Shown: in pieces, positions 51 through 34,554 of the stretch
Numbering within the stretch: the first letter of the stretch is position 1
How the letters are laid out: each line of letters starts with the position of its first letter
From: Cercozoa sp. M6MM
Taxonomy: Eukaryota; Protista; Endomyxa: Ascetosporea
Reading direction: 5' to 3' (one strand)
Length of the DNA stretch: 34,554 bases
NCBI GenBank assembly: GCA_040357565.1
Contig: JBDODJ010000120.1
Translations under genes and position numbers: made by a program
The notes under the pieces: model-generated
What the model was told of the DNA's origin: nothing
Databases searched by the model: none
What the model saw: the letters and a program-made list of their open reading frames with translations, nothing else

Positions 51-937
51 GGTGCTGCACTGCGCGTGTCTGCGACTAGTGTAGTCTGCAACGTCGCGCT
101 GCGTTCCTCCGAGCGGCTGCTGCGGTTTCTTTATCCCCTTTACCCTCCTTCTTTATCCCATTCTCACAGGACACTGCACGACGGTTTCAAGAAAAAGGGC
201 GCCGATGACTTGTGTACCTTCTCTGTCTCGGAGTCTAGGTGACTGCCAGGATTTATAGTATTTGTCGCCGGCTCGCAGTGCTCGAGGATCCGCGCGGAGT
301 GCTGCAAATGTACGCCAATGTGCTCAATATTCCGCAGGTAGCCTATTTTTTATCGACACACATATATACATATATATATATATGTCTGTTTTTTATATAT
401 ATATATGTATATATGTATATATGTCTGTGTGCATGGTCACAGTGGATGAGCAAGGCAGCGGCCTATTGCGGCGGAAGACACGGCGATGTGCTGCTCGGCC
501 GACTGCAGCACACGGCGGCTGTACTACTCCCTCCCTCCCTTCCGTCTCACCTCCTGCCTGTCCGCCCTCTACCTCCCTTTCTTCCTAGCGACTGCAATCC
601 CAGGTGGAGGAAGCTTGCCGACGTGCCGGTAGACTGGACCTGGACGGACTGAGTTTGTATTTGTATGTGCGTATGTATGTGCTGCAGGCATCAATCCCTC
701 GAGTTGCTTCGACTCGACAGTGTCACAGGTAAATTTACACACTCGGTTGTGTCCGTTTTATTCTGTCTTGATTGGTCTGATCCAACGCAAGCAGTCCCAG
801 CAGTCGCACCCGACGCTGTCGCAACGCAGCGGCAGTCAGCGTCGCGACCACCGCCGCCTGCGACCAACGAACTCAAGCGGCTCCTTAGCGAGCTTCCACT
901 GACCGCGCGCGGCGTTCAGCGCATTTGTGTTGAATGA
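51..937 (+). CDS. 3' part of a multi-exon gene, unknown product (5' end outside window)
   Basis: About 7 short exons bounded by GT..AG introns with pyrimidine or (TA)n tracts. Spliced reading ...VTARIYSICRRLAVLEDPRGVLQMYANVLNIPQ/WMSKAAAYCGG.../RLQSQVEEACRRAGRLDLDGL.../...ELKRLLSELPLTARGVQRICVE*, TGA at 935-937. No family recognised. Confidence 0.6.
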
Positions 938-1269
938 GGAACGGAAAGGAACTCAGTCCTAATTGAAACAAAGCGAAGACGAGAACTTGCGGTATTAGCC
1001 GAGCAGCTAATGATGCTCCGCACACGGCTAGTGAGTTTATAGAGCACATACCGGGTCAGTGAAACGTGCTATCTTGCTATATAAGTGTTGTTGGACTGTT
1101 CGCGTCGGTTTTAATTCTCTTTCAACAAGCCTCCGAGCTTTCTGAAGGGTATGTCTTCTAATCCTCCCCTTTGACGTCTGTCTAACTGGCGTTGAGCTTC
1201 CTCCGTTAGTCGCCTTCAATATCTGAGGTACTGGTTCCCATAAGTTTACTGTAACACTGAACAGTTCAG

Positions 1270-31940: not shown

Positions 31941-32172
31941 GCTACGGAGTCCGCCCTAGTTTAGTTTATATTGGTTTTACCTCCCTTGGGACACGTTTTA
32001 AATGACAAAACGTCAAACGATTGTCGTGTGCCAACTCCGCTTGACTCGTCGGTCGTCGCAGCCTTAACAAAAAGGATATTGTGCATTTGGTGTTGTTCGG
32101 CAGTTTCGCTAGATTTTCGTGCGTGAGGCTTAGTGGTTGCTGTATTTAATACGCACGTGCCCCGATCGGGAA

Positions 32173-34554
32173 ATGAGCTCGCCAGGAAATGAGGTTGCTC
32201 CAGAAGAAGAAACGCACGGATGCTCGGTACTGTGATATGTACTAGTTTGCGCCTTCCTCCGGGGTTCCTGTCGTATGTATCTGAGTTGTGCGTCAGGTTT
32301 GCGTTCACCACGAGAGAGATGGCGTTCACTACGTTGTAAAAGCGGAGTTGTATTCTTCTCGGAGTATGCGATTGCGCACTGTGTTTGTGGACAGACTTGC
32401 CGGCACACCTCTCGACTGCAAGCGCTGAGAGAGGCGATTCGACCGTCGTTGAACATAAACACGGTATGTATGCAGCTTGTGTTAAGTAATTGTACGCCTT
32501 TACAGTCTGCCTGTGTTTGTTCGGCAGAGAAGAAGACTCAATGAGGAAGAGGTTGCACGACTCAACGCCCTCGATCGGTAAGACATGTATGTACGCGTGT
32601 CTGTGCGGCATGCCCTGTACACAGACAAGTGATGAATGCGGTGTTCACGCCGCTGGCACCGACAGCGTCGGTGGACCTGCCACCGGCAGCAGCGTCGCTG
32701 TCGAACCGGCAGTCGCCGGTAGTCGAGATGTACGTGATCGGTGACAGCGATGAAACCGTTGCGACGGTGTGCGACGACAGTGACGGTGGCGATCAGCACA
32801 CAGACGGTGATGTCAGTGACACCGATACCAGTGGCACCATCGACTCCGACCGCGCGGAGCGATCGACGCCGGTGCACGTGCTGGCCAGCTACGCCGACTG
32901 CGGATGCACCGTCGACGATGCGGACGGTGTAACTGGTGATGCCACCTCTGTCACGGTCAGTAGTCACACCACCACTGTCCGCGCGGACGACAAGTCCGAC
33001 GACGCGGTCTCTGCCAAGTCGAACGAGTCGCGCACGCAGCTCTTCTTTTTGTTCCTGTAAGCTGGTCAGCCCCTTCCTTCTCTCGCTTTCTGACTCTCTC
33101 CTTTTGCGGGCAGTTTCGGTCGCTCGCGCATGGTGAAACTGTCGCGGATATACACTGCCTTTTGGCGACGATATGAAGTACTGCACATCTCCCATCTTTA
33201 TCTCTTCTTTCCCTTGCCTTATACTTTGTCAATTCGACTGTTATAGAAATGGCGACCGCCTCTCTGGGTTTCGATTACGGGTACTACCTTCATCTTGATT
33301 CTTTACCTCCCTCCTCCTGGTTCTATCTAACGGTTTGTGTGTGTGTGTGTGCGTGCAGTGCTGCTGCTTGGCTTCTCGTGTCTCGCTCTGGCCGTGTAGG
33401 TCGCTCTCTGTGTTCTTGTTATTTCCGACCTTACACTGCCTCCGTGTTGTTAACCTTAACCCTTGGCGCAGGTACCTGGCCTTCTTCGCGGCCAACACGT
33501 CGCTGGGTCGGCCCACCATGATGGGCTGCCGCGACCCGTCGACTTGGCGCTGCGGTAACCTCGGCGAGAACTGCATCGCTGGCTGGTACAAAACAAGGCC
33601 CTGTGTCTGCGTGTGGTCTGTATGGACTGTGCTGTATGGACTGTGCTGTATGGAATGTGGTCTATCTGGACTGTACATACTGTACATGACAGGGACGAAG
33701 CAACGGCGATTCGGTGCGGCGAGTGCGGCTACGCGCATGCGTTGCACGATACCGACTCGGCCTGGCTGTGGCCGGTAGTTTATTCTTCTACTCCCTGTCC
33801 CCGTTCCTGTATCATGTCATGACTTGTGTGCACAGGTCGGAGACGGTCCCGTGCACGGTAGGTTTTGGAATCGTCCGTGCACACATGTGTGTGTACACGT
33901 GTGTGTGTGTGTGTGTGCGTGTGTGTGTGTGTGTGTGTGTGTGTGTGTGTGCAGGCATGCGAGGCAGTGCGTGTCTAACGGCGTACACCAAGGGCGTTTT
34001 TGGTGCCGACGGTGGCTGTGCTTCGTTGCGGTAGTCTAGCCCTTATGTCGTTAGCCCTTTGCCCCCTATACTTCCCGGCTGGTTCTTCCAGGCTGCTGCC
34101 AGGTGCCAATGTTTTCATCGGTACACGCGACAACACGACTTCTGACTCGTATAGTGCACTTACTGCCCTTACTTCCACCTCCGCCCCGCGCTTCCTGTTA
34201 TCCATGTTGTCATCCTGAAGGTGGGAGGCTGTGTCGTACCAAATCGAGCCGCTGGCTTGGTCGTCTGGCTGTGTGGATTGTATTACTGTTGTGTATCTCA
34301 ATCCAGCTACTTTTCTTACTTTTTGTTGTGCGAAGTGAGATACATGGTGCGTATCGTTGCATCGGCCATGTGCATGTTGTTGTGTCTCGTGAAAGCGCCA
34401 GACTTTCTGTACACTCTAACTAGTTTGACTGTTGGCCTATCTTACCCCCTCGGGCAGTTTCTTCTCTGCTTTGGTGACGAGTGGTTTCATCGACGTTCTC
34501 TTCACGGACGAGTCGCAGTGGAACGCACTCTCAGGTAGGATCTACCCTCTCCCC
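32173..34554 (+). CDS. Unknown single-pass membrane protein: acidic/Ser-Thr-rich N-terminal region, TM helix, Cys/Gly-rich C-terminal region (runs off window)
   Basis: Spliced MSSPGNEVAPEEETHGCS/VCVHHERDGVHY/TCRH...; D/S/T-rich exon 32624-~33026; basic RIYTAFWRRYE/KWRPPLWVSIT/VLLLGFSCLALA/.YLAFFAA; then GCRDPSTWRCGNLGENCIAGW, RCGECG, SACLT, GGCASL. Confidence 0.6.
33887..33951 (+). repeat. Intronic (TG)n tract in the last gene
   Basis: TG run ending directly at the CAG acceptor. Confidence 0.93.

Follow-up and report, generated by a model that had tools for sequence, protein, structure and literature searches.

Why does the perfect 10-bp palindrome TCCGCGCGGA recur throughout a 34,554-nucleotide stretch of Cercozoa sp. 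M6MM DNA (contig JBDODJ010000120.1 of assembly GCA_040357565.1; hereafter the window), in exons and introns alike? An original prediction, made from the letters of the window, had likened the word to the cyanobacterial palindrome HIP1 and proposed that a DNA-level system creates or maintains it regardless of coding, naming as options a methyltransferase, repair-driven site creation and a DNA-binding protein. In this study, we followed the word from the window into the whole assembly. We rank the DNA-binding protein first: TCCGCGCGGA would be the site at which a homodimeric protein binds DNA, and selection would preserve it at every location, a reading to which we give a probability of roughly 40%.

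Abundance and boundaries of the palindrome

An exact search located TCCGCGCGGA at positions 289, 16016, 17301, 20539, 20675, 23752, 24275, 27515, 27675, 30362 and 32978 of the window, which are the 11 copies that had been predicted; dinucleotide-preserving shuffles gave a mean of 0.04 copies and a maximum of 1. We also recovered the predicted counts for the core CCGCGCGG, which occurs 14 times in the window, 11 times with T...A flanks. The enrichment extends far beyond the window. The 23.6-Mb assembly contains 2,239 copies of TCCGCGCGGA and 33 copies of the reversed control word, about 70 times the matched control, and the copies are spread across contigs from C1 to beyond C2000. The core is present 3,239 times genome-wide (control, 556), and 69% of these cores have T...A flanks, compared with about 5% by chance. 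This corresponds to one copy of TCCGCGCGGA per 10.5 kb in the genome and one per 3.1 kb in the window (∼3.3 times the genome average). In an unbiased sample of 234 kb, consisting of the window and positions 1-200,000 of contig C1, we counted 24 copies, while 0.18 are expected from an order-3 Markov model and about 1 even at order 5. With microsatellites set aside, TCCGCGCGGA is the most over-represented 10-mer of this sample.

Near-copies and close pairs are in excess as well. Sites with one mismatch number 2,848 genome-wide (control, 887), and six of them are in the window, at 5122, 11099, 23700, 25670, 25691 and 32849. Pairs of TCCGCGCGGA 10-100 nt apart occur 144 times genome-wide, compared with ∼19 under a Poisson model, and several of the pairs that we retrieved are located in unique sequence. 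The pairs have a mild 3-nt periodicity (p = 0.035), reflecting coding repeats; helical phasing at 10.5-11 bp was not significant (Rayleigh p ∼0.06-0.12).

Could composition, codon usage or the assembly itself produce these numbers? One codon frame of the word, R-A-D/E, uses preferred codons, and Arg/Ala/Asp/Glu-rich helical proteins do hold several copies. However, the order-5 Markov model falls short of the observed count by a factor of 20, a codon model yields only about 18 copies per million codons with 96% of them in one frame, unlike the observed spread, and about half of the copies are non-coding. The copies are also in unique sequence, on many contigs and far from gaps. The window has four assembly gaps (15853-15862, 20838-20847, 26705-26804 and 30991-31000; the second within an intron microsatellite), each inside a long (CA)n/(TG)n microsatellite with the same repeat on both sides. 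Since the gaps lie inside microsatellites, at least 154 bp from any copy of TCCGCGCGGA, the counts are unaffected by them. Apart from its microsatellite stretches, no part of the window has many matches elsewhere in the genome. An artefact is refuted by the counts, and we leave it hardly any probability.

For the bulk of the copies, the unit is exactly 10 bp long, sharply bounded and not part of a longer repeat. Related spacings occur at expectation in the 234-kb sample (TCCGGA, 23 versus 26 expected; TCCGCGGA, 2 versus 2; TCCGCGCGCGGA, 0), and we found no wider palindrome around TCCGCGCGGA, the left and right flanks of a copy being complementary at the random level of 25% per position. Outward preferences appear when half-sites are pooled: the next base is Y in 74% and the one after it R in 75%. 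The extended forms described in the original prediction are present, with an R-motif-Y extension in 7 of the 11 window copies and the 14-bp form CGTCCGCGCGGACG at 24273-24286. By our own estimate, obtained by partitioning with degenerate patterns, positions 1-2 and 9-10 have, per position, ∼2.7 times the excess of one-off sites seen at positions 3-8. Flank composition did not serve as a discriminator; GC content, complexity and CpG near the copies were those of random positions and of other CpG-rich words.

The flanks bear on the possibility that TCCGCGCGGA is linked to a small mobile element, similar to an introner or a miniature inverted-repeat transposable element (MITE), as its remnant or core or as its target or footprint. 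Small families do exist, among them 23 sites with a common 13-nt arm, related intron starts recur on separate contigs, and there are non-coding tandem arrays with units of 31-32 bp and 107-118 bp. However, only a few per cent of the copies belong to these families. No common flanks were found among the 24 copies of the unbiased sample (24/24 unique), as had been claimed for the window, and 18.5 kb of the window, searched as DNA against the whole genome, matched microsatellites only, so that none of the 10 window copies covered lies in a dispersed repeat. A search for terminal inverted repeats or target-site duplications at TCCGCGCGGA found none, the flanks show only random symmetry, and three exonic copies align without gaps to homologues. 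The mobile-element explanation, including the variant in which the copies are fragments of a longer transposon, is thus largely refuted for the bulk of the copies and seems very improbable to us overall.

The families themselves have the following structure. The ∼23 sites with the 13-nt arm belong to introns that start with GTATTTTCCYRCA followed by TCCGCGCGGA. This intron family is present on contigs C140, C269 and C79 and is in places amplified as 31-32-bp tandem units within one intron, as seen in an Aquarius-like gene; in the C79 member, the arms form an imperfect palindrome of ∼34 nt. The non-coding tandem arrays containing TCCGCGCGGA have units of 31-32 bp on C140 and C269 and of 107-118 bp on C133. 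Further related intron starts of 34-41 nt that end in TCCGCGCGGA form a pair (C16:34923-34966 and C24:86839-86882) and a triplet (C2:57486-57520, C10:161906-161941 and C5:238015-238055). The recurring starts may be small dispersed intron families or belong to paralogous genes.

Exonic copies and maintenance in diverged introns

We compared exonic copies with homologous proteins. A copy on C1 encodes I-R-A-E at about residue 290 of NFS1, aligned without a gap to I-M-K-S, and another C1 copy encodes S-A-R in the 3-ketodihydrosphingosine reductase TSC10/KDSR, gapless against C-A-A. In the window, the copy at 17301..17310 encodes P-R-G in an exon of a plus-strand NDOR1-like gene, gapless against P-V-C of human NDOR1 and directly preceding the conserved LGDDQH. 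Because all three align without an indel, they arose by substitutions at variable residues of conserved proteins and not by 10-bp insertions.

All three codon phases are used, as had been claimed. Among 18 exonic copies that we read, 10 encode x-R-A-D/E, 5 P-R-G and 3 S-A-R, while a codon-frequency model built from the well-scoring open reading frames of this genome predicts 96%, 2.6% and 1.5%, respectively. The latter two are predicted to be rare because they force the rare codons GGA and CGG (7% each). The frame independence of TCCGCGCGGA is real and runs against codon preference. A coding tandem array at C64:32712-33387, with 27-bp units encoding A-V-R-A-E-E-x-S-D on the minus strand, contains ∼15 copies of TCCGCGCGGA and several of its CpG-transition variants.

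A tandem gene on the minus strand of C133 (27453-29543) allowed us to compare the word with its surroundings. It contains at least 10 repeats of an exon of 39-42 nt (N-V-Y-G-G-N-T-G-F-D-T-G) with nine introns of ∼60-100 nt between them, and each of these introns has TCCGCGCGGA or a one-off variant. The intron segments on the two sides of the word are only 55% and 49% identical between units, compared with 50% and 45% when shuffled, yet the word itself is 95.6% identical across the nine introns (7 exact, 2 one-off). Its distance to the splice sites floats, from 17 to 52 nt upstream and from 18 to 37 nt downstream. As the flanks are randomised and the word is nevertheless intact in 7 of the 9 introns, neutral decay is excluded, and TCCGCGCGGA is actively maintained, by selection or by some restoring process. 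Upkeep regardless of coding, as originally proposed, is supported.

A first possibility is a restoring process, in which sequence-specific DNA modification or a bias of mismatch repair or gene conversion would turn near-matches into TCCGCGCGGA and restore decayed copies, as a drive without a needed function. Such restoration would explain the conserved word in the randomised C133 introns equally well, and near-copies cluster beside exact copies in the window. The pattern is also that of HIP1: it is frame-independent and genome-wide, and one-letter deviations favour the outer positions, as reported for HIP1, in which the first and last positions are preferred (PMC4390886, section 2.6). Several observations stand against a drive. 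One-mismatch sites are in excess instead of being swept up, and the density of TCCGCGCGGA is about 10-fold below that of HIP1. The observed/expected ratio of CpG is 1.06, which argues against widespread 5-methylcytosine. Variants with a central CpG-to-TpG change occur 870 times (control, 435), compared with 599 versus 318 and 448 versus 458 for two sets of transversions. CpG transitions are the commonest central variants by ordinary transition bias, being neither hyper-frequent, as for methylated CpG, nor depleted, as for a drive based on T:G repair; a deficit of CpG transitions, as in a very-short-patch-like drive, was hinted at by the 234-kb sample and rejected by the genome-wide counts. Eukaryotic mismatch repair is, moreover, not known to be methyl-directed. 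Profile searches of the genome for C5 (PF00145) and N4/N6 (PF01555) DNA methyltransferases gave no match, although the control PF00557 caught the fragmented prolidase gene of the window only at E = 6e-4, so the search is marginal on fragmented genes and leaves absence unproven. With these results, the proposed methyltransferase link found no support, and we consider a drive of this kind unlikely.

Selection on the binding site of a dimeric protein is the reading that we prefer. The perfect palindrome, the sharp 10-bp core, the graded edges and the homotypic clusters are most simply explained as a symmetric-dimer site on duplex DNA, and the graded information outward resembles a protein footprint, as does the larger excess of one-off sites at the outer positions, which also resembles the deviation pattern of HIP1. 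A sequence-specific protein would bind double-stranded TCCGCGCGGA as a symmetric dimer, with the strictest reading at the central CGCGCG and more tolerance at the outer C and T. Purifying selection would keep the ∼2,200 exact sites and ∼2,000 excess near-sites (about one per 5-10 kb). We infer that their job would depend on chromosomal position and not on promoters, for example in chromatin organisation, transcription through gene bodies, replication or recombination. The floating position in introns and the presence of copies in exons, untranslated regions (UTRs) and flanking DNA argue for such a chromosomal role and against one anchored to splice sites. Intergenic DNA is almost lacking in the genome, so the sites would be forced into exons and introns, and in exons they would be placed by substitution at variable residues.

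Four points weigh against this proposal. First, transcription-factor sites are normally degenerate and promoter-bound, and TCCGCGCGGA is unusually exact and mid-gene. Second, the sole candidate family is E2F/DP, for which the genome encodes one locus with an E2F_TDP domain; this is a lead drawn from the CGCGCG-type sites of the family, not evidence of binding. A CG-1 domain was not found in the genome, and Zn2Cys6 domains (Zn_clus, PF00172) had no match, a weak negative, since controls of the same search also gave none. Third, the tests run did not separate selection from a conversion drive. Fourth, the presence of an own copy in each of nine adjacent introns of ∼70 nt fits an intron-local function in RNA or splicing at least as well.

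The last point leads to the possibility that the word acts in RNA. The self-complementary transcribed word could pair with other copies, or be bound as a duplex, and thereby aid pre-mRNA processing in a genome of tiny exons and short introns. Besides the nine C133 introns, each keeping its own copy, it is consistent with this that almost the whole genome is transcribed, that the 144 close pairs would make 10-bp GC stems, that ∼23-40 introns begin alike with GTATTTTCCYRCA and TCCGCGCGGA, and that in a subset of copies the distance to a GTAY 5' splice site is fixed at 12-13 nt. GTA is found exactly 13 nt upstream of TCCGCGCGGA in 137 cases (∼59 expected), with a further peak at 22-23 nt. A general coupling to 5' splice sites was rejected, as only a minor subset is involved (GTAT within 30 nt, 415 versus ∼363 expected). 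Against a role in RNA, ∼70% of the listed copies lack another copy within 1 kb, only ∼2,200 among far more introns bear the word, the splice-site distance floats in the C133 introns, and there are copies in exons, 3'UTRs and probable 5' flanks. A binding site in single-stranded RNA would also not need a perfect palindrome. Taken together, we think a function in RNA improbable.

The restoring process could be seen more broadly as a eukaryotic counterpart of the highly iterated palindromes (HIPs) of cyanobacteria. A sequence-specific DNA-level process such as repair, conversion or a novel type of modification would then write and restore TCCGCGCGGA in exons, introns and UTRs of a nuclear genome, overriding codon preference. 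A self-pairing RNA word needed by each short intron would be equally unprecedented. We regard such a counterpart as possible, if doubtful.

Gene context of the window copies

The remaining window copies are found in the following contexts. Four are placed by reading alone. The copy at 289..298 reads as part of a short exon (P-R-G) between AG and GTAGCC, with its frame assigned by reading only. That at 16016..16025 is in an exon of a minus-strand gene (S-A-R) with a positive codon score, 154 bp from the gap at 15853-15862, the exon being assigned by splice-site and frame reading only. On the plus strand, the copy at 30362..30371 reads as intronic, 27 nt after a CAG/GTACTCC junction, and the copy at 32978..32987 reads as exonic (V-R-A-D), with a one-mismatch copy at 32849. 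Two neighbouring copies share a minus-strand gene: 20539..20548 is in the middle of a 75-nt intron, and 20675..20684 encodes I-R-A-E in the adjoining exon, which its codon score supports. The copy at 23752..23761 reads as intronic in a minus-strand gene and has a one-mismatch copy 52 bp away at 23700. The 14-bp form CGTCCGCGCGGACG, with TCCGCGCGGA at 24275..24284, belongs to a minus-strand gene; it lies in the first coding exon and encodes P-R-G within an Arg-rich, presequence-like segment. Two minus-strand copies are in consecutive introns of a prolidase gene, 27515..27524 in a 63-nt intron, 23 nt past the 5' splice site, and 27675..27684 in the preceding intron of 62 nt, 14 nt past the 5' splice site; these introns flank a 29-codon exon matching Xaa-Pro peptidases, with Pfam support. 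The exon and intron assignments of the original prediction therefore stand for 17301, 20539, 20675, 23752, 24275, 27515 and 27675, and for 289, 16016, 30362 and 32978 our splice-site and frame reading agrees with them.

Two of the one-mismatch copies, TACGCGCGGA and CCCGCGCGGA, lie 21 bp apart at 25670..25700. Another, TCAGCGCGGA, is at 11099-11108 in the first coding exon of an HSP90 gene, where it encodes F-S-A-D.

All 11 window copies are genic, in agreement with the intragenic placement emphasised originally. The putative gene spans are separated by only a few hundred bases, so that 11 of 11 is roughly at the level of chance, and with spacers this short the placement carries no signal. Elsewhere in the genome, some copies are located just past a stop codon or upstream of a long open reading frame, in probable UTRs or flanking DNA. 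An enrichment near the 5' ends of genes, hinted at by the window, was contradicted by the copies in NFS1, TSC10 and prolidase. Two measures of coding were set aside. Open-frame length is uninformative (the median longest open frame at any position is ∼150 amino acids), and self-trained codon scoring captured only strongly biased genes; it called 25% of copies and 6% of random positions strongly coding, and was not used as a proportion.

The introns of the window (11128-11285, 11690-11765 and 12147-12241, and those in 26850-28600) are 60-160 nt long, start with GTAY, GTAG or GTGT and end with YAG. Low-complexity sequence of the C-rich, T-rich, (TA)n or (TG)n type makes up their interior, and words such as CCCTTACCCC are intron filler.

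A second palindrome, TAAATTTA, is also over-represented, with 19 copies in the 234-kb sample (1.6 expected), and has unique flanks; it is often extended to GTAAATTTAC (6 versus 0.19 expected). In the window it is located at 730, 6800, 6838 and 8954, with 15 further copies in the rest of the sample. Two of its copies are in the short spacer between two genes (6649-6843), suggesting that, unlike TCCGCGCGGA, it may serve as a promoter or terminator element in intergenic DNA.

Known systems and the meaning of the word

We next compared TCCGCGCGGA with known short palindromes. Degenerate, T-flanked and promoter-proximal sites, numbering in the hundreds, are bound by the winged-helix proteins E2F/DP; they have the form TTTSGCGC with a palindromic CGCGCG core. 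TCCGCGCGGA shares with them a CGCGCG centre suited to recognition by a dimer, and its half-site TCCGC, read from the centre, is one base apart from TTCGC. It differs in being exact, mid-gene and present in thousands of copies, and those in prolidase, NFS1, TSC10 and NDOR1 are not located in promoters. The vertebrate CGCG element TCTCGCGAGA, the BANP/Kaiso motif, has thousands of near-exact copies in CpG-island promoters, where it is recognised by a dimeric, CpG-sensitive reader. Both words are 10-bp palindromes of the form TC...(CG)n...GA, and the 234-kb sample has no copy of TCTCGCGAGA (0 versus 0.5 expected). Fungal Zn2Cys6 sites, such as the PDRE TCCGCGGA, consist of everted CCG...CGG triplets with T/A flanks, as does TCCGCGCGGA; this 8-bp form is, as noted above, not enriched here, and the weak negative for Zn_clus also sets the two systems apart. 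Introners and MITEs are resembled by the few per cent of copies in short-intron families sharing GTATTTTCCYRCA and TCCGCGCGGA, while the bulk is solitary, with unique flanks, without terminal inverted repeats or target-site duplications, and with gapless substitutions in exons.

The closest pattern is that of HIP1 (GCGATCGC) and the alternate HIPs of cyanobacteria, GC-rich short palindromes that are over-represented in all frames at about 1 per kb (Elhai 2015, PMC4390886). Like them, TCCGCGCGGA is grossly over-represented across coding and non-coding DNA, occurs in all frames and has unique flanks and outer-position deviations. It is, however, a different 10-bp word in a eukaryotic nuclear genome with GT-AG introns and genes such as HSP90, NFS1 and NDOR1; its density is one per 10.5 kb compared with ∼1 per kb; and no cognate methyltransferase was detected in our marginal search, with CpG statistics giving no sign of cytosine methylation. 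With a different word, host and density and no methyltransferase detected, TCCGCGCGGA resembles HIP1 in pattern without belonging to its class.

Bacteria are known to have short palindromes throughout the genome, in coding and non-coding DNA alike; HIP1 and uptake sequences are examples. A literature search, covering the word and its core as well as eukaryotic iterated palindromes, gave nothing relevant as a precedent in a eukaryotic nucleus. Since TCCGCGCGGA is exact, genome-wide and preserved in randomised introns, some machinery must recognise its 10 specific base pairs, thousands of times over. The reader most likely acts at the level of DNA. With ∼2,200 defined sites, a single oligonucleotide and natural paralogous controls, the system is simple to test whichever explanation holds.

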